NCBI GenBank assembly: GCA_965603825.1
Contig: CBFDEM010000046.1
Location: 620,001 to 684,000, forward strand
Direction of reading: 5' to 3'
Length of the DNA stretch: 64,000 bases
Origin: Blepharisma stoltei ATCC 30299
Taxonomy: Eukaryota > Protista > Ciliophora
Below are positions 36,033 through 45,638 of the stretch, one piece after another. The stretch's first letter is position 1; every line of letters begins with the position of its first letter. A program made the position numbers and the translations under genes. The notes under the pieces are model-generated. The model saw only the letters and a program-made list of their open reading frames with translations, searched no databases and was not told the origin of the DNA.

Positions 36033-37172
36033 ATGGCTGTCGAACAAATGCAAAAATTGTTCATATCTCTATGCTTGCTCGCTACAGTAAGTTTAGCTGC
36101 TGATACTGTATGCTATCCAGTCGAATGCAAGTTGAGTACTCAGACTTTTACTTCAGAAACCTGTGCATATTGGGATAAAGCCTCAGACATCTATTATTTG
36201 GAAGCTTGCAGCTCAACTTCATACTGCCCATCCCTTGACTTTGAGGATCCTGCCAATTCTACTTGTGCTACAACCCCAACTACCACTTTAAATAAGTACC
36301 CTGGCGAAAAATGCACAGCTACCTCTGACTGTGACACTACTTACGCTACAGGTGGATGTGTCGGCGGTGTCTGTGTAGGTATAAGCGCTAACGGAAACTG
36401 CACACATTATGGTGAATGCGAGCCCGGGTACTACTGCGGCTCAGAAGGCAAATGCATTTCCCAAGTAAAAGTAGGCGGCCAATGCGAAAATGATTTCCAA
36501 TGCATAAATGGGGCTGGCTGTAACATTACAACCACAGCCACTTATGGTACATGTGTTTCTTATTTCAGCGTTGATGATCATGCTCGTGTAGCAACTTGTA
36601 ATAGCACTTTGAATAATTATTTATGTGCTTCTACTATGTGTGATACTGATAATGGAGAAGCTATCTGTTTAAGCTCTGTAAAATCGAAAATGGGCAACTT
36701 ATTGCCTATGATCTGCGAAAATAACGACCAATGTGAATCAAGTGCAGACCCAGTGACTGGCTACATTTATACACTAGACTGCGTTTGTGGGCTTAATAAG
36801 CACGGCTATAGCTTCTGCAACCAATGGCCTGGAGATCCAGACTTCGCGCATCTGATACAAATGTGGAAAAAGTGGGTGTTTTCAACAAATGTCGACAAAT
36901 GCAATACCTTGAGAAGGCAGAATTTCCAGTGCATTGCTGATTGGTGGGATTCCAATGATATGACACTTTTGAATTATTTCAGCCTTAAGACGAATTACTG
37001 GCCTTATCTTCAGATGAACGATGATTGTACTCAGAATATGTTTTTGAGCGATTATTATAAAGTGCAAGAATCTTATAATGCACTTCGTAATACTACCGAT
37101 CCTGATGACCATCATGAAACATCGTCAGCTATTTTATTAGGTTTTTCGTTGCCTCTTTTAGCTTATGCTTAA
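36033..37172 (+). CDS. Cys-rich probably GPI-anchored surface protein, tandem copy A
   Basis: Signal peptide, dense Cys pattern, KYPGEKC, CVCGLNKHGYSFCNQWPGD, C-terminal SSAILLGFSLPLLAYA. Confidence 0.9.
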   Translation: MAVEQMQKLFISLCLLATVSLAADTVCYPVECKLSTQTFTSETCAYWDKASDIYYLEACSSTSYCPSLDFEDPANSTCATTPTTTLNKYPGEKCTATSDCDTTYATGGCVGGVCVGISANGNCTHYGECEPGYYCGSEGKCISQVKVGGQCENDFQCINGAGCNITTTATYGTCVSYFSVDDHARVATCNSTLNNYLCASTMCDTDNGEAICLSSVKSKMGNLLPMICENNDQCESSADPVTGYIYTLDCVCGLNKHGYSFCNQWPGDPDFAHLIQMWKKWVFSTNVDKCNTLRRQNFQCIADWWDSNDMTLLNYFSLKTNYWPYLQMNDDCTQNMFLSDYYKVQESYNALRNTTDPDDHHETSSAILLGFSLPLLAYA

Positions 37173-38198: not shown

Positions 38199-39338
38199 AT
38201 GGCTGTCGAACAAATACAAAAATTGCTCATATCTCTCTGTTTACTAGCTACAATCGGTTTAGCAACTGACATTGCATGCTATCCAGTCGAGTGCAAGTTG
38301 AGTACTCAGACTTTTACTTCAGAAACCTGTGCATATTGGGATAAAGTGTCGGACACTTATTATTTGCAAGACTGCAACTCAACTTCATACTGCGCATTCC
38401 CTGAATTTGAGGATCCTGCAAATTCTACTTGTTCTACAACCCCAGTTACTGCTTTAAATAAATATCCTGGCGAAAAATGCACAGCTGACTCTGACTGTGA
38501 CACTACTTACGCTGCAGGTGGATGTGCCAGCGGTGTCTGTGTAGGTGTAAGCTCTAACGGAAACTGCACACAGAATGGTGAATGCAATCCTGGGCTTTTC
38601 TGCAGTTCAGAAGGCAAATGTGTTTCTCAGTTAAAAGTAGGCAGCCAATGTGAAAACGATTACCAATGTATAAATTGGGCTGGCTGTAATATTACAAGCA
38701 CAGCCACTTATGGTACATGTGTTTCTTATTACAGTGTTTCTGACAATACTCGTATAGCCTATTGTAGTGATGCTATGCAAACTAATTTATGCGCTTCTAC
38801 TTTATGCGATACTGTTAACGGTGAAGCAGTCTGTTTAAGCTCTCTAAAATCTAGTAAGGGTAACTTATTACCTATTATCTGTCAAAATAGTGACGAATGT
38901 GAGTCAACAGTAGACCCAGGAACTGGCAGCAGCTATACAGTAGACTGTACTTGTGGACTTAATAAGCATGGCTATAGCTTCTGTGGCCAATGGCCTGGAG
39001 ATCCAGACTATGCCAATCTGATACAGATGTGGAAAAAATGGACTCTTTCAGCAAGTATAGACAAATGCAATACAGTGAGAAGGTTTAAAAAGGTCTGTGT
39101 GGCTGACTGGTGGGATTCAAATGATGTGACACTTTTGAATTATTTCAACCTGAAGGTGAATAACTGGCCTTATCTTCAGATGAATGATGAGTGTGTTCAG
39201 GATATATTTATGAGCCTGTATTATGAAGTGAAAGAAGCTTATAATGCAATTCGCAATACTACTGATCCTGATGAGCATCATGGGTCTTCCTCAGCTATTT
39301 TATTAGCGTTTTCGCTATCTTTTTTAGCTTATGCTTAA
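38199..39338 (+). CDS. Cys-rich probably GPI-anchored surface protein, tandem copy B
   Basis: Same length (379 aa) as and colinear with copy A; shared upstream ataatcataaATGGCTGTCGAACAAAT. Confidence 0.9.
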   Translation: MAVEQIQKLLISLCLLATIGLATDIACYPVECKLSTQTFTSETCAYWDKVSDTYYLQDCNSTSYCAFPEFEDPANSTCSTTPVTALNKYPGEKCTADSDCDTTYAAGGCASGVCVGVSSNGNCTQNGECNPGLFCSSEGKCVSQLKVGSQCENDYQCINWAGCNITSTATYGTCVSYYSVSDNTRIAYCSDAMQTNLCASTLCDTVNGEAVCLSSLKSSKGNLLPIICQNSDECESTVDPGTGSSYTVDCTCGLNKHGYSFCGQWPGDPDYANLIQMWKKWTLSASIDKCNTVRRFKKVCVADWWDSNDVTLLNYFNLKVNNWPYLQMNDECVQDIFMSLYYEVKEAYNAIRNTTDPDEHHGSSSAILLAFSLSFLAYA

Positions 39339-39627
39339 ATTAATAGATAGCGTTTTACATTTAGGTTTTAAATAGAAATAAATTGAGTGTTATCACGCCT
39401 GAGGCGCCATTTATTAATTAATTTACCAATTTTAAAATAAATTTCGCATTCATCTATGATTTCTCATTTATTTTTTCATTAAATTATTTATTTCAGCTGC
39501 AATTTAATAACAAATTTTGCCCTCTGGGCAGACTAATTTTTTCCCTTACAAGGAGAAAATCTTTACAGATTTTGAGTGCCTTAATATAAATTCTATTTAT
39601 TTCTATTAATTATTATATTATTTTTCT

Positions 39628-40614
39628 ATGAGGAAAAATACATTCCAAGCTGATATTGTTAAAAAAGGCTCACCAATATGCTGTGTATGCGGTGAAGCAA
39701 TACCTATTGGAGATATAAGAATCAAAGTTCAAGGATACCATATATTGCACTTATACCACTTTAAATGCTACACCCCAAAGGTAAAGCAGTATATTTGTAA
39801 AAATGATGTAAAAAATCGCTTGGACTCAGCAAATGCTGAAATTCTCAATAATTGGATTGATGAATGAAACCAAGATTATGTCCCACTTGATAAACCTTTT
39901 CGGGAACCGCCACAATTTTCTAAACTTGTGGAATCTAGTCCCTCTAGATACAGAAGAGCCTGGCTGGAGATTTTCAAATTCCTTGACGCAATAGAGGTTT
40001 TCAAATCTTACTCTTATGTCAACAAGGAATTCTACCACATATCATGAGATCAAGAATTGTGGCACTTTTACTGCGTCAGAGATTATGCTGATGTTGCACT
40101 ATATGATCAGGAAAAAAATTATCGCTCACAATACGTAATCATATACATGGAGTCATGCTTTTGATGCCATACGCGCCAAACTGAAGAAAACTTCAAAAGG
40201 TGCCCATTAATTAAAAAACCAATTTGCGATAGCTGCAAAAAACTTGAGAGGTTTAGCTGTATGTGTAAAAAAGATATTCAGGCTAGATACGGTATAAATC
40301 CTAACATTTTACAGCTTAATTTTGGTGAAGGAGGCTGAGGGACTAAAGTTGTCTATAGATATATGGCTGAAGAAGCAATAGAGTCATTTAGAAAACGAAA
40401 TAAAGATTTTTTGCTTGGATTTATGAAGGAAAATAACTCAGACCCAACTCTGATTGAATTTCTTGAAAAAAACGATATAAAAAATATGCCATCCTGGGAT
40501 CTAAATGAAAATGTTGTGGAATCCACAGATCCAATTTACCGACTGATATACCAATATGTGAAAGACAAAGTAAATGAAAAGAGACTTCTAAGCAAATTGA
40601 GAGCTCATAAATAG
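39628..40614 (+). CDS. zf-PARP + F-box + XPA-like protein, copy 1 (328 aa)
   Basis: Continuous with TGA=W. CCVC..I..G.IRI..HFKC; WLEIFKFLD..VNKEFY..W.QELW; CFWC..PICDSC; YRYMAEEA. Confidence 0.85.
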
Positions 40615-40859
40615 CAGCTTATTAAAAGCATTTAAAATTAAAAATTAGCTAACTCCAAAAATAATCCTTATGTAAGAGCAATGGTCTCCATTAACTATAA
40701 AGGCTACTTCTTATATAAAAAATTATCGATAAAATTGCTTATTACAGTTAAAAACTATAATTTTAAAGAGTTAAATATACTATAGATTAAGTCTTTACAG
40801 TTTTTGAGCACCTTAATATAAATTCTATTTATTTCTGTTAATTATTATAATATTTTGCT

Positions 40860-41845
40860 ATGAGAAAAAATGCATTCCAAGCTGAAATTGCAAAAAGAAA
40901 CTCAAAATGCTTAGCATGTGGTGAAATCATACCTATTGGAGCTATAAAAATCAAAGTTCCAAGATTCCAGGTATTTGACTTCTACCACTTTAAATGTTAC
41001 ACGCCAAAGGTAAATCAGTATATTTGTAAAAGTGATGTAAAAAATTGCTTGGACTCAAAAAATGCTGAAATTCTTAATAATTGGATTGATGAATGAAACC
41101 AAGATTATATACCACTTGATAAACCTTTTCGGGAACCCCCACAATTTTCTAAACTTGTGGAATCTAGTCCCTCTAGATACAGAAGAGCTTGATTAGAGAT
41201 TTTCAAATTTCTTGATGCAATAGAGGTTTTCAAATCTTACTCTTATGTCAACAAGGAATTCTACCACATATCATGAGATCAAGAATTGTGGCACTCTTAC
41301 TGCGTCAGAGATTATGCTGATGTTGCACTATATGATCAGGAAAAAAATTATCGCTCACAATATGTAACCATGTACATGGAGTCATGTTTTTGATGCCATA
41401 CGCGCCAAACTGAAGAAAACTTCAAAATCTGCCCACTAATTAAAAAACCAATTTGCGATAGCTGCAAAAACTTGAGAGGTTTAGCTGTATGTGTAAGGCA
41501 AGTATTCAGGCTAGATACGGGATAAATCCTAATATTTTACAGCTTAATTTTGTAGAAGGAGGCTGGGGGACAACTAAAGTTGTCTATAGATATATGGCTG
41601 AAGAAGCAATAGAGTCATTTAGAAAACGAAATAAAGATTTTTTGCTTGGAGTAATGAAGGAAAATAACTCAGACCCAACTTTGATTGAATTTCTTGAAAA
41701 AATCGATATAAAAAATATGCCATCCTGGGATCTAAATGAAAATGTTGTAGAATTTTCAGAGCCAATTTACCAATTGATATACCAATATGTGAAAGACAAA
41801 GTAAATGAAAAGAGACTTCTAAGCAAATTGAGAGTTCATAAATAG
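40860..41845 (+). pseudogene. zf-PARP + F-box + XPA-like copy 2, with 1-bp frameshift
   Basis: TGCAAAAACTT (5 A, 41466-41470) versus TGCAAAAAACTT (6 A) in copies 1, 4 and 5; otherwise intact and near-identical to copy 1. Confidence 0.7.
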
Positions 41846-42131
41846 CAGCTTATTAAAAGCATTTAAATTAAAAATTAGCTAACTCCAAAAATAATCCTTA
41901 TGCAAGAGTAATGGTGCCCATTAACCATATAAGCTCTTTCTTATAAAAAATATCAAAAATTTATAGATACAAATTGATTATTGCAGTCAAAAAATATAAT
42001 TTTAAAAAGATAAATATACTATAACTATAATAAAATTACAGCCCTGAGACCAGAAATTATTAATGTTTAGGTTATTATATTATTTTATGAATTTTTATAG
42101 AATCATTTTATAATTATAATTGAATTCATAA

Positions 42132-43115
42132 ATGAAGAGGATCTTAATTCATGCTGAGATGGCTAGAATGGACTTAAAATGCAAAGAATGTCAGAAAAGT
42201 ATAGCGATAGGAACTTTAAAGCTTAGAATTTTCCTTGGCTTTACAGACTTGCACCATTTCGGTAATTTTCATCTTAACTGTTATGATCCTCCAGTCAAGC
42301 ACTATATTCCTAAGACTGATTTAGTTATGCGTTTAGATCCAGAAAATACCAAAATATTAAACGAGTGGCTTGAAAATTGAAATAAAAATTTTACCACACC
42401 TGCTACAATTTTTTCTAAAAGTGTGAACTCATCCCCTTCTAAATATAGAAGATCCTGAATAGAGATCTTTAGATTTCTCGATGCTGTGGAGGTTTTAAAA
42501 ATTTATTCCCAAGTAAACAAAGAATTTTACCATATATCATGAGATGAGGAATTGTGGCACTTTTACTGTCTAAGAGAATACTCAAAGGATTTAATAAATA
42601 ATAATGAGAAAAGTTACCGTTCGCAATATATAATTCTACGAACAGAATGCTGCAATTGATGCCATATGTATTTGGGTGGAGAATATTTTTATAGGTGCCC
42701 TTTGATGGGAAAGCCTCTTTGTGAAAACTGTAAAACCCTTAAGAGATTTGAACTGATGTCGAAAGGCGAAATTCTTGGAGAATTTAGAATAAATGCAAAT
42801 ATCCTGAATATAAAATTTGTAGAAGGATGCTGAGGCCGAAAAAATACTTATAGATATATGGTAGAAGAAGCAGTGGAGTCTATGTGCAAACGAAATAAAG
42901 ATTTTTTGATAAAAATATTAAGGGAAAATACAAATCCAATTTTAATTGATTTTATTGAAAAGATTGATATAAATAAAAACAAAATTTCAATAATAGACAT
43001 CAATCAAGTTATAGACGAACCGAGAAAGGAAATGTGTACAATGATTTATGAATATGTAAAATATGGATTTCACAAAGCTAAACTTTTGAAATTGCTTAAA
43101 AAATATTATAACTAA
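42132..43115 (+). CDS. zf-PARP + F-box + XPA-like protein, copy 3 (327 aa, most divergent)
   Basis: CKEC..IAIGTLKL..FHLNC; WIEIFRFLD; CNWC..PLCENC; five TGA=W. Confidence 0.85.
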
Positions 43116-43477
43116 CAAAACTAAGCTAAATATAACTAATTACAGTACCTTTTTACAAATAACTCAATAGTAAGGTTAATGCCCATACAGTTATACAAAT
43201 AATTATTAAAAATGTATAAAAAACGTCACAAACACTTGCAGGCATTATTCCTATCCTGAAAATATATTGATTTTGCTAACCTTCTTTGAATTATTACAAA
43301 TTTCTCTTTAATATACAAAAAATCATCAATTTCTGATAAACAAAATTTTTCAAAATTTTATGAATTATAACTCCCAGTGCAATAAAAGTATAATTATTCC
43401 TAGCTGTAGAAATTACTGTTTTCTTGATTTATTAAAATCAAATCTATTCAATTCTGCTGATAATTAATAATCAAAAT

Positions 43478-44467
43478 ATGAAAAAGACCTCATTTCAAGC
43501 AGAGATTAGTAAAAGACAAACAAGATGCAAAGTATGCAAGAAAACTATAGATATAGGGATTATAAGAATTAAAATCCACTCATATGATCATTTTGATTAT
43601 TACCACTTCGAATGTTATACCCCAAAGATCAAACAGTACATTTCTAAAAGTGATTTAGGGATTAGATTAGACCAAGAAAATGCTAAAATTCTAGATGCAT
43701 GGCTTGAAAACTGGAATAAAGATTATGTACCTCTAGATAAAGCTTTCCATGAGACTCCAACTTTTTCTAAACTTGTAGAAACAGCTCCTTCTAAATACAG
43801 AAGAGCATGGCTAGAAATATTTAAATTTCTTGATGCAGTAGAATTGTTTAAGATTTATTCTCATGTGAATAAAGAATTTTACCACATTTCATGGGACGAA
43901 GAATTATGGCATTTTTACTGTGTAAGAGATTATACAAATGCTGCACTGGATGATCAGAAAAAGAATTATAGAACTCAATACATAATTCTTAGAATGGAGT
44001 CATGCTTTTGGTGCCATGCACATCAATCTCAAGAAAGATTCAATAGGTGCCCATTGATAGGAAAGCCAATATGCGAAAAGTGCAAAAAACTTAAAAGATT
44101 TGAGCAGCTGCATAAGTCACAAATCGAATCACGGTATGGGATAAATCCGAATCTTCTGCAGCTGAAATTTGGTTTAGGCTATTGAAATAAAAAAGTTGTA
44201 TACAGGTATATGGTAGAAGAAGCTCTTGAAACTTTCAGAAACAGAAATAAAGAATTTCTGCTTGAAGAAATGAAGAAAATTAATTTAGACCCTACTTTGG
44301 TTGATTTTGTTGAAAATATCGATATAAAGACTGTTGATAAGCCTTGATCAGAGATATTACAAAGCTCAGGAAATCTGTATCTTCTGCCAATTCATGAGAT
44401 AATTTATAATTATATACGAGACAGAAAAGCAGAAAAAAAACTCATAAATAAACTTAAATCTACATAA
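43478..44467 (+). CDS. zf-PARP + F-box + XPA-like protein, copy 4 (329 aa)
   Basis: FQAEISKRQTRCKVCKKTIDIGIIRI..YHFECY; F-box; CFWC..CEKC; ends TAA at 44465-44467. Confidence 0.88.
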
Positions 44468-44657
44468 ACTTAATTATTATTTAACAGCTTCCTATTTATA
44501 GTCTGAAAATTAATAGCGATTTGGGTTTTTGCTCTTTTAAAGAAAATACTATAATTACTACCAGTGCAAAAATCAATACAATTATACTCAGATGCATAAT
44601 TACTGTCTTTTTGATTTATCAAAATAAATTAAATTTTCTATAATTAATAATCAAAAA

Positions 44658-45638
44658 ATGAAAAGGACTTCATTCCAAGCAGAAATAAGCAAAAGAGATA
44701 CAAAATGCAATACATGCAAGGAGAGCATAGATCGAGGAGTCATAAGAATTAAAATCCACTTAATGGATCATTATGATTATTATCACTTAAAATGCTATAC
44801 CCCCAAAATCAAACAGTATATTTCTAAAAAAGATTTAGGGATAACCCTAGACCCAGAAAATGCTAAAATTCTAGATGAATGACTTGATAACTGGAATAAA
44901 GATTATGCCCCACTTGACAAAGCTTTCCATGAGCCTCCAACTTTTTCTAAGCTGGTAGAATCGACTCCTTCTAAATACAGAAGAGCCTGGCTAGAAATAT
45001 TTAAATTTCTTGATGCAGTCGAATTGTTTAAAATTTATTCTCATGTGAATAAAGAATTTTACCACATTTCATGGGACGAAGAATTATGGCATTTTTACTG
45101 TGTAAGAGATTATACAAATGCTGCACTGGATGATGAGAAAAAGAATTATAGAACTCAATACATAATTCTTAGAATGGAGTCATGCTTTTGGTGCCATGCA
45201 CATCAATCTCAAGAAAAATTCAATAGGTGCCCATTGATAGGAAAGCCAATATGCGAAAAGTGCAAAAAACTTAAAAGATTTGAACAAATGTATAAGTCAG
45301 AAGTCGAAGCAGTCTATGGGATAAACACTAATCTTCTACAGCTGAAATTTGGAATAGGCACTTGGAACAGAAAAATTGTTTATAGATATATGGTTGATGA
45401 AGCTCTGGTTATATTCAGAAAACGAAATAAAGAATTTCTGCTTGAAGAAATGAAGAAAACTAATTTAGACCCTGCTTTGATTGATTTTGTTGAAAATATC
45501 GATATAACAACTATGGATAAATCTTGATCAGAGACATTAGAAAGCTCCGAAGATCCAGTTCATGAATTGTTTTATAACTATATAAGAGACAAAAAGTCAG
45601 AAAAAAGAGTCTTAAACAAGCTCAAATCCATAAAATAA
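44658..45638 (+). CDS. zf-PARP + F-box + XPA-like protein, copy 5 (326 aa)
   Basis: Paralog of copy 4; ends TAA at 45636-45638. Confidence 0.88.

Follow-up and report, generated by a model that had tools for sequence, protein, structure and literature searches.

A tandem array of F-box protein genes with PARP-type finger and XPA/Rad14-like modules in the ciliate Blepharisma stoltei

Results

Five paralogous genes lie head to tail

The window analysed here is the whole 64,000-nucleotide stretch of Blepharisma stoltei DNA. Positions 39628-45638 on its + strand contained five head-to-tail genes when TGA was read as Trp (translation table 4). The genes, named g1 to g5, and the associated features are listed below, with database entries of the encoded proteins in brackets.

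39557..39627, + strand: 5' flank of g1; a second copy lies upstream of g2 (40789-40859) at 90% identity
39628..40614, + strand: g1, intact, 328 aa (P0003), with 4 in-frame TGA=Trp codons
40860..41845, + strand: g2, frameshifted, with frames of 221 aa (P0004) and 118 aa, otherwise open until the homologous stop
41466..41470, + strand: A5 run of g2, the site of the 1-nt frameshift (A6 in g1, g4 and g5)
42132..43115, + strand: g3, intact, 327 aa (P0005)
43364..43476, + strand: 5' flank of g4; a second copy lies upstream of g5 (44551-44656) at 84% identity
43478..44467, + strand: g4, intact, 329 aa (P0001), the copy used for the AlphaFold model
44658..45638, + strand: g5, intact, 326 aa (P0002)

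Four of the five copies (g1, g3, g4, and g5) were intact and encoded proteins of 326-329 aa. A previous inspection of the letters without database searches (the sequence-only reading) had proposed five colinear genes of about 327 aa with TGA=Trp at exactly these limits. This held, as did the motifs that it quoted, all of which were present on the table 4 translation, with the correction that g2 is not intact. Compared with the homologous A6 run of g1 (40237-40242), the A-run of g2 lacked one base, which split the frame. Homologous A-runs of g4 and g5 showed length heterogeneity among contigs from public runs, and the g2 frameshift could be genuine or could reflect an error in homopolymer length. 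For computed comparisons, g2 was read with X at the frameshift.

The in-frame TGA codons all aligned with TGG (Trp) in some paralogue, and UGA=Trp is stated for B. stoltei in its genome paper (PMC9942806). Searches were performed with TGA-free pieces (43478-44182, 44883-45524, and others) and with the full-length database entries P0001-P0008.

The g1/g2 duplication unit also took in about 170 bp downstream of the gene. At the protein level g1 and g2 were 88% identical, g5 and g4 82%, and g3 was the most divergent copy (48-51% identity to the others). Overall dN/dS between array copies was 0.17-0.37, indicating purifying selection; by part, it was 0.03-0.13 in the F-box, 0.23-0.92 in the finger, and 0.30-0.66 in the tail. 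Because the copies were 48-88% identical in protein and under purifying selection, the array with its motifs was far beyond chance. The five paralogous genes form a locally duplicated array, and their products belong to a family of F-box proteins of about 330 aa.

Contigs from four runs covered coding parts of g1, g3, g4, and g5, with zero depth in all bins confined to intergenic sequence, and one 944-nt contig matched 43484-44427 exactly. These runs were only guessed to be RNA, and the comparison was made at the contig level, without expression level, timing, or strand. Since the contigs covered coding parts only, the array genes are likely transcribed, provided that the runs are RNA as presumed.

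Each protein joins three known modules and a variable tail

In each protein, a PARP1/DNA-ligase-III-type finger was followed by an F-box and its linker helices, then by an XPA/Rad14-like module, and finally by a variable tail of helices. The parts of g4 were as follows.

43478..43723, + strand: residues 1-82, PARP/ligase III-type zinc finger with ligands C17, C20, H43, and C46
43790..44002, + strand: residues 105-175, F-box and linker helices, by profile and structure matches
44003..44263, + strand: residues 176-262, XPA/Rad14-like module, net charge +9
44264..44464, + strand: residues 263-329, tail of four helices, poorly conserved

The full-length AlphaFold model of g4 had a pLDDT of 94.8 and a pTM of 0.88, and it predicted that all parts pack into one compact body. 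Structure comparison of the tail (residues 263-329) gave no convincing known fold. A sub-threshold Pfam match to EDS1_EP recurred (E about 2e-4, residues 145-231) and was taken as spurious, since neither structure nor profile comparisons backed it. Conservation and charge counts reported here rest on 74 aligned family members, in which the F-box and the tail were near neutral in net charge.

The N-terminus is a PARP-type zinc finger

The N-terminus was a zf-PARP-type finger by sequence and fold, without data on DNA binding. Its zinc ligands were near-invariant (C17, C20, and H43 in 73 of 74 members, C46 in 72 of 74). Searched against PDB sequences, the family profile matched PARP1 F1F2 (E 3.4e-11), Zn1 alone (5.9e-6), and the Lig3 finger (1.9e-4). 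Structural matches to PARP1 Zn1/Zn2 reached Z 9.0-9.1 (rmsd 2.1-3.0 over 74-77 residues) and to Lig3 Z 7.2, with a Foldseek probability of 1.00. Against Pfam zf-PARP itself, the window copies gave E 6.6e-6 to 0.028 and 15.6-27 bits, below the gathering cut-off of 39.3. UniProt labels the paralogues P0006 and P0011 'PARP-type domain-containing'.

In PARP1, R34 is the 'backbone grip' residue and F44 lies in the base-stacking loop. The equivalent of R34 is R30, which was Arg in 47 of 74 members and Lys in g2 and g3. The loop between ligand pairs was 22 residues in the B. stoltei array family versus 28-30 in PARP1, and alignments placed the roughly 6 missing residues exactly at the F44 base-stacking loop. 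Recognition of break ends by the array finger may therefore differ or be lost.

The middle part is an F-box

The middle part was an F-box both by sequence and by its three-helix fold. Pfam F-box-like (PF12937) matched 8 of 8 close members, with a best E of 2e-6; the window copies scored 22-23 bits, just below the cut-off of 24.3, which was passed by the relatives P0012 (26.9) and P0036 (30.9). The family profile matched the F-boxes of beta-TrCP1 (E 2e-6), KDM2A (2.4e-6), and Skp2 (4.5e-5). In structure comparison, residues 103-175 matched FBXO31 (Z 8.3), Fbs2 (8.2), FBXO3 (8.0), and FBXW8 (7.1), with rmsd 2.6-3.6 across 67-71 residues; the FBXO31, Fbs2, and FBXO3 structures were all solved with Skp1. 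No canonical Leu-Pro was evident at the F-box start, the Pfam match beginning at profile position 10. The B. stoltei genome contained 11 loci with a Skp1 domain. Binding of the array proteins to Skp1 and assembly with Cul1-Rbx1 are inferred, with neither an experiment nor a complex model behind them.

Residues 176-262 form an XPA/Rad14-like module

The third module was composed of a C-x2-C-x19-C-x2-C zinc finger, an alpha/beta subdomain of DNA-binding type, and a long helix. C176, C179, C199, and C202 were invariant in 74 of 74 members. The x19 spacing characterised the window family, and the paralogue P0190 had x17, the exact XPA spacing (C-x2-C-x17-C-x2-C).

XPA was not recovered in every search. 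Scanning the window copies directly against Pfam produced no XPA match, and full-length profiles against PDB returned no XPA among 25 matches at E<=10, nor among 60 of the 66 matches of a second profile. When a module-only profile was searched against PDB, the six best matches were all Rad14/XPA (E 5.5e-4 to 1.3e-2). An unbiased structure search of 48,161 chains returned XPA 6j44 at Z 6.9 (90 of 95 residues) and Rad14 at Z 6.0 (87 residues) and 5.7, these being the only structures that spanned both subdomains of the module; within the full g4 model, XPA/Rad14 matched at Z 6.1 and 6.0. A Z of 6-7 is moderate by the aligner's own caution. Foldseek ranked Rad14/XPA first to sixth with the domain model (probability up to 0.97) and XPA only at rank 38 with the whole model (probability 0.35). 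By hhalign, the module matched P0190 (probability 97.4, E 1.3e-11), a paralogue that scores 31.3 bits for Pfam XPA_C, above the cut-off of 25; a direct XPA_C match was found in 1 of 74 family members (E 9.2e-6). Residues 176-262 are thus an XPA/Rad14-like module by profile and fold, without DNA-binding data.

All three domain calls of the sequence-only reading were supported when tested by sequence-profile and structure searches. The zf-PARP call stands below Pfam gathering and with a short loop, the F-box call with window copies just under gathering, and the XPA-like finger and DNA-binding subdomain with moderate Z. That reading had named the absence of a structural match to XPA or to zf-PARP as grounds for refutation, and both matches were found.

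The module was basic: its net charge had a median of +9 and was positive in 74 of 74 aligned members. XPA K141 and K179 have roles as DNA contacts. In the window copies K213 and K239 aligned with them; family-wide, Lys was present at the K141 equivalent in 27 of 74 members and at the K179 equivalent in 33 of 74. The other structural neighbours of the C subdomain were all DNA-binding domains of MerR/excisionase type. From charge, Lys positions, and structural neighbours, we infer that nucleic-acid binding by the module is plausible; binding data are lacking.

Profile and structure searches outside residues 176-262 found nothing XPA-like, the ERCC1-, RPA32-, and TFIIH-binding regions being absent. 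The array protein therefore carries an XPA-like domain and is a domain homologue of XPA, not an XPA orthologue. This bears on one alternative, that these proteins are DNA-repair scaffolds taking over part of the XPA role in heterotrichs, with the F-box as a Skp1 docking or regulatory handle and not primarily for substrate ubiquitylation. In its favour, a six-frame Pfam search found no XPA_N in the B. stoltei genome, and the sole above-threshold XPA_C match there was the F-box-like protein P0190. Against it, the family lacks the three XPA partner-binding regions, twenty paralogues are hard to square with a single core repair scaffold, and a divergent XPA, or one split by introns, could escape a six-frame search with short models. 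We consider this alternative unlikely.

The family is large

As the sequence-only reading had suggested, family members were counted genome-wide. The B. stoltei genome yielded about 20 loci, and public data contained at least 241 clusters. The names returned by 30 cluster look-ups were B. stoltei, Stentor coeruleus, and one plant multi-finger protein, so that the family members with an organism name were those of the two ciliates; the other clusters were metagenome, Logan, MMETSP, and EukProt entries. Two contigs retrieved in this survey were gene-dense eukaryotic DNA. The ESM Atlas gave nothing informative on the family.

The literature searched held no description of the zf-PARP, F-box, and XPA-like architecture, and no papers on B. 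stoltei with F-box or on zf-PARP with F-box in ciliates. The B. stoltei genome paper and its supplement (PMC9942806) did not mention PARP, XPA, F-box, or ubiquitin. The sequence-only reading had not recognised the architecture among characterised proteins, and this held: as far as the literature searched goes, the three-domain design is undescribed, and the combination of a PARP finger and an XPA domain with an F-box is not known from characterised proteins.

Discussion

Our main reading is that the array proteins are SCF substrate receptors held on unusual DNA structures, to which we assign a probability of roughly 0.5, both DNA binding and Skp1 binding being inferred. Through its F-box, each protein would dock onto Skp1-Cul1-Rbx1 and act as an SCF substrate receptor, and the two repair-sensor folds would keep this receptor on nicks, gaps, or single-strand/duplex junctions. 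Proteins at such DNA structures, or the receptor itself, would be ubiquitylated, and the variable surfaces of the tail and finger may give each paralogue its own preference. The roles raised by the sequence-only reading, SCF ubiquitylation at breaks or junctions with DNA elimination or defence as a possible setting, remain a hedged inference.

A possible alternative is that these are ordinary fast-diversifying F-box receptors whose zinc modules and tail recognise protein substrates and not DNA. By analogy with the contact of the XPA zinc subdomain with RPA and the interdomain contacts of PARP fingers, repair-sensor folds may have been reused as protein-binding scaffolds. This is supported by a large, tandemly arrayed family (about 20 loci in the B. 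stoltei genome, with 241 or more clusters elsewhere), by surface variation, dN/dS being highest in tail (0.30-0.66) and finger (0.23-0.92), by the truncated base-stacking loop, by the lack of family-wide conservation at the XPA DNA-contact equivalents, and by a compact packing (pTM 0.88) that could hide DNA-binding faces. However, the XPA-like module is strongly basic, with a positive charge in 74 of 74 members, and the structural neighbours of its C subdomain are all DNA-binding domains. Moreover, all zf-PARP domains characterised to date are known to bind DNA discontinuities, which also counts against this alternative.

If the DNA-structure-reading receptor is correct, these small proteins of about 38 kDa would fuse a ubiquitin-ligase adaptor to DNA-lesion or junction sensing in a minimal, naturally occurring form, and would offer a simple system for how ubiquitylation gets aimed at DNA structures. 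The XPA DNA-binding domain would then have a role outside nucleotide excision repair. The question is sharpened by the organisms themselves, whose somatic nuclei are highly polyploid and which contain photosensitising pigments and carry out programmed DNA elimination on a large scale. The family also prompts one to ask whether a canonical XPA exists in Blepharisma at all. A bolder version, against which we lean, is that heterotrich ciliates evolved DNA-structure-reading SCF receptors with two repair-sensor folds and dozens of paralogues, in effect cullin-RING readers of damage or junctions. These may stand in for a canonical XPA, which the genome seems to lack, or police the breaks of massive programmed rearrangement.

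A special case of the DNA-sensing reading is action in sexual development, at programmed-elimination breaks of the new macronucleus, or against proteins bound to transposons or foreign DNA. The support is circumstantial only: IESs in the tens of thousands are removed from the genome of this organism (PMC9942806, PMC9942856), and homology marks the modules as sensors of breaks or junctions. Against it, no such genes are mentioned in PMC9942806 or its supplement, and expression timing is lacking. We regard this case as very unlikely.

Comparison with known systems

PARP1 Zn1/Zn2 and the DNA ligase III finger (PF00645) share with the array proteins the fold, the C-x2-C...H-x2-C site, and, in 47 of 74 members, the Arg at the R34 position. 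PARP1 and DNA ligase III pair their fingers with a catalytic PARP or ligase partner, whereas the array proteins join a single finger to an F-box, with a base-stacking loop about 6 residues shorter and a Pfam score below gathering. With XPA/Rad14 the array module shares basicity and a C4 finger followed by helix, beta-hairpin, and long helix; it differs by x19 instead of x17, an extra conserved Cys-Pro, and a shorter hairpin.

An 'F-box clade' of remote XPA homologues was noticed in a survey of eukaryotic XPA and set aside as an outgroup (PMC10810185). Its members resemble the array proteins in having F-box/F-box-like matches and some XPA_N/XPA_C matches. However, that clade is said to lack conserved cysteines and is uncharacterised, whereas the four cysteines of the array family are invariant. 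No ciliate names appeared in the examined supplements of that survey, and identity with the array family is thus not established.

FBH1 (F-box and UvrD helicase), which was among the fold matches of the array protein model, and KDM2A/KDM2B (CxxC finger, F-box, and LRR) likewise carry an F-box and a DNA-binding module in one chain. The DNA-binding-type modules of the array proteins are entirely different, and these much smaller proteins have no helicase, demethylase, or LRR. CRL4-DDB2 is a cullin-RING receptor that itself recognises UV-damaged DNA and ubiquitylates the proteins present there. Its likeness to the array proteins is a functional analogy only: DDB2 belongs to the WD40 DCAFs on Cul4-DDB1 and not to the F-box proteins on Skp1-Cul1, and it is unrelated to the array proteins in sequence and fold.

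Organization of the gene array

The window belongs to the Blepharisma stoltei macronuclear assembly (contig C46, 620001-684000). Translated with TGA as Trp, it contained five paralogous genes, g1 to g5, arranged head-to-tail on the + strand:

39628-40614, +, g1, 328 aa, ORF read with TGA=Trp
40860-41845, +, g2, split into 221-aa and 118-aa frames, TGA=Trp
42132-43115, +, g3, 327 aa, ORF read with TGA=Trp
43478-44467, +, g4, 329 aa, ORF read with TGA=Trp
44658-45638, +, g5, 326 aa, ORF read with TGA=Trp

The sequence-only reading had proposed five colinear genes within 39628-45638, and with this translation its limits proved exact, except that g2 was not intact. UGA encodes Trp in B. stoltei (PMC9942806). 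The 17 in-frame TGA codons of g1, g3, g4, and g5 were confined to seven columns of the codon alignment, and at every one of these TGG was present in another copy.

The A-run of g2 consisted of five A (41466-41470), with six in g1 (40237-40242), g4 (44084-44089), and g5 (45264-45269); being one base short, it broke g2 into its two frames. No other lesion was found in g2, and all zinc ligands were kept. Some public contigs carried one extra A at the g4 and g5 runs homologous to the g2 site, indicating that length errors or slippage do occur there, and given these g2 may or may not be a pseudogene. Technical homopolymer error, slippage, and allelic variation are all conceivable causes of the varying run length across g1, g2, g4, and g5.

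A second local duplication adjoined the array directly upstream, a tandem pair of 379-aa paralogues (36033-37172 and 38199-39338, +). Judged by sequence alone, these cysteine-rich proteins with a hydrophobic N-terminus look secreted or surface-type.

Domain architecture of the encoded proteins

The g4 protein was modelled by AlphaFold with high confidence (pLDDT 94.8, pTM 0.88), and the model was compared exhaustively with 48,161 chains. The finger (residues 1-82) matched PARP1 Zn1/Zn2 with Z 9.0-9.1 and rmsd 2.1-3.0 over 74-77 residues, and its Foldseek probability was 1.00. Pfam zf-PARP matches to the finger pieces of g1, g3, g4, and g5 remained under the gathering score (E 6.6e-6 to 0.028); with the 74-member family profile, E was 3.4e-11 for PARP1 F1F2, 5.9e-6 for Zn1 by itself, and 1.9e-4 for the finger of ligase III. 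The zinc ligands C17, C20, H43, and C46 were near-invariant among the 74 members, and R30, which aligned with PARP1 R34, was Arg in 47/74. Unlike PARP1, however, the family finger lacked about 6 residues exactly at the base-stacking loop in the alignments.

The F-box (residues ~105-175) was supported by F-box-like Pfam matches in 8/8 close members, with the window copies scoring 22-23 bits versus a cut-off of 24.3 and relatives scoring 26.9 and 30.9 bits. The family profile matched beta-TrCP1 (2.1e-6), KDM2A (2.4e-6), and Skp2 (4.5e-5) in an alignment typical of F-boxes. By structure, residues 103-175 matched FBXO31, Fbs2, and FBXO3 (Z 8.0-8.3, exhaustive comparison), all three solved with Skp1, and the B. 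stoltei genome contained 11 Skp1-domain loci. The N-terminal zf-PARP finger and the central F-box proposed earlier thus both held.

The boldest earlier assignment, an XPA-like module (residues 176-262), was not recovered by direct Pfam scans of the window copies, nor did full-length family profile searches surface an XPA match. It nevertheless held on three independent lines: module profile, structure, and a paralogue bridge. In the first, Rad14 and XPA took the six top ranks (E 5.5e-4 to 1.3e-2) when a module-only profile of 74 sequences was searched against 177,635 PDB sequences; the alignment spanned the zinc finger and the next helix, and one family member gave a Pfam XPA_C match at 9.2e-6. 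In the second, the module region of the full model had XPA (6j44, Z 6.1) and Rad14 (5lcl, Z 6.0) as its only good matches, the next unrelated match restricted to this region having Z 3.8. When the module was modelled alone (g4 residues 168-262, pLDDT 89.5), Rad14/XPA filled Foldseek ranks 1-6 with probability up to 0.97, and the exhaustive aligner ranked XPA at the top (Z 6.9, 90/95 residues), followed by Rad14 (Z 6.0, 87 residues). No other match covered both subdomains; all remaining neighbours were MerR/excisionase-type winged-helix DNA-binding domains matching the C subdomain only (Z 4.7-5.9).

The third line was a paralogue encoded elsewhere in the genome:

contig C6 (L024:1264-2247), -, P0190, 327 aa, weak F-box-like N-terminal part, no PARP finger

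P0190 had the sole XPA_C match over the Pfam threshold in the whole B. stoltei genome and the exact XPA cysteine spacing, C-x2-C-x17-C-x2-C. The module of the window family aligned with it by hhalign with probability 97.4 (E 1.3e-11, 85 columns). A Pfam search found no XPA_N match anywhere in the genome; with the lone XPA_C match lying in an F-box-like protein, Blepharisma may lack a canonical XPA. On this possible absence rests the alternative that the family is a repair scaffold standing in for the missing XPA, which was less supported and which we consider unlikely.

The module cysteines C176, C179, C199, and C202 were invariant in 74/74 members. The module was positively charged in all 74 (median net charge +9), whereas the F-box and tail were near neutral. 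XPA K141 and K179 contribute to DNA binding; K213 and K239 of the window copies aligned with them, and Lys occupied these positions in 27/74 and 33/74 members, respectively.

The C subdomain also resembled part of a human SLC30 zinc transporter, its putative DNA-binding domain (Z 4.5), a resemblance that recalls a published survey where a 'cation efflux' clade grouped with relatives of XPA (PMC10810185). A plant EDS1 EP domain match in g4 residues 145-231 (43910-44170) and its g5 counterpart was repeated yet sub-threshold (E 2-3e-4, 21 bits versus a cut-off of 23.1); without support from structure or profile searches, it was probably spurious. The remaining residues, 263-329, formed a tail of four helices, the least conserved part of the protein, for which the exhaustive comparison of the g4 model gave no convincing fold match (Z ~4).

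Expansion of the family and selection on the array

Protein identity was 88% for g1/g2, 82% for g4/g5, about 60% between the two pairs, and 48-51% for g3 versus the other copies. The dS was 0.16 for g1/g2 and 0.39 for g4/g5, and saturated (at least 1.3) between the pairs and for g3 versus the others. The g1/g2 duplication unit took in flanks of about 71 bp (upstream) and about 170 bp (downstream) at 90% identity, and that of g4/g5 about 105 bp upstream at 84%. A quick maximum-likelihood tree was built from 83 family members, without the g2 fragment and one ORF cut at its end. In it, the four intact copies formed one clade (SH-aLRT 92) nested in a B. stoltei-only clade (SH-aLRT 99) with paralogues from contigs C53 and C44, and the array therefore grew in place.

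About 20-23 family loci were found in the B. stoltei genome; 18 were full-length ORFs, distinct from each other, in which both zinc motifs were present (again without the g2 fragment and the end-cut ORF). They included:

contig C44, around 639038 (L013:1273-2715), 480-aa member, PARP-type finger motif and XPA-like match
C47:742771-746003 (L009, L010), -, tandem pair P0011 and P0159, same family

The 480-aa member had about 150 additional C-terminal residues. P0011 and P0159 were nearly identical (branch lengths 0.03-0.04), and this second tandem pair indicated that tandem duplication was recurrent in the family. Elsewhere in the tree, B. stoltei paralogues fell in several clades intermixed with sequences of other organisms, and a second large clade contained no B. 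stoltei member; the origin of the family therefore predates that of the species. Among 1.84 billion cluster representatives, searched exhaustively, 241 matched at E<=1e-3 and 151 of these at E<=1e-10; the majority had about 330 aa and aligned end to end. In 30 clusters that were looked up, family members with a named organism belonged to only two species, B. stoltei and S. coeruleus (Stentor; OMJ69623.1), and UniProt gave them no more than the labels 'PARP-type', 'F-box' or 'GATA-type domain-containing'; a plant multi-finger protein was the one further named entry, and the rest were metagenome, Logan, MMETSP, and EukProt sequences. Confinement to heterotrich ciliates is likely, without having been shown.

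The array genes were under purifying selection (dN/dS 0.17-0.37); the F-box was the most constrained part (0.03-0.13), and the tail (0.30-0.66) and N-terminal finger (0.23-0.92) were the least constrained. Between g4 and g5, pS was 0.12 in the F-box core versus 0.31-0.42 elsewhere, consistent with local gene conversion, which remains a tentative explanation. On these data of duplication and uneven constraint, the main rival to a DNA-reading role is an ordinary expanding F-box family that reused its zinc modules as protein-recognition surfaces, and it remains possible.

Probable transcription of the array

Logan contigs from four runs of one study covered the coding regions of g1, g3, g4, and g5, and covered g2 in patches, with zero depth in all wholly intergenic bins in 4/4 runs. 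A 944-nt contig was identical to 43484-44427, with no differences. That these runs are RNA is a guess; on this basis at least four copies are likely transcribed, at a level, strand, and timing that the data do not give. A development-specific role at programmed breaks was less supported and is in our view very unlikely.

A putative DNA-structure-reading SCF receptor

The architecture, zinc-site conservation, basic XPA-like module, purifying selection, and presence of Skp1 genes in the genome were shown. The mechanism is inferred: the F-box would dock onto Skp1-Cul1-Rbx1, the finger and XPA-like module would keep the receptor at nicks, gaps or single-strand/duplex junctions, proteins located at those DNA sites would be ubiquitylated, and paralogues would be differentiated by their tails and variable surfaces. 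The earlier proposal of SCF ubiquitylation aimed at DNA breaks or junctions thus remains an inference, and we give the mechanism as a whole a probability of roughly 0.5.

The array proteins are likely F-box substrate receptors, the receptor role being inferred, with an undescribed domain combination. The sequence-only reading did not recognise this architecture from characterised proteins, and no paper describing zf-PARP, F-box, and XPA-like modules together was found in the literature searched. A survey of XPA evolution mentions an 'F-box clade' that gave some XPA_N/XPA_C hits; the clade was left uncharacterised, discarded as an outgroup, and said to lack the conserved cysteines (PMC10810185). 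It may or may not be the present family. By domain, the closest relatives are the PARP1/Lig3 fingers and XPA/Rad14. By logic, they are the DNA-binding F-box proteins FBH1 and KDM2A/B, together with CRL4-DDB2, a receptor that reads damage.
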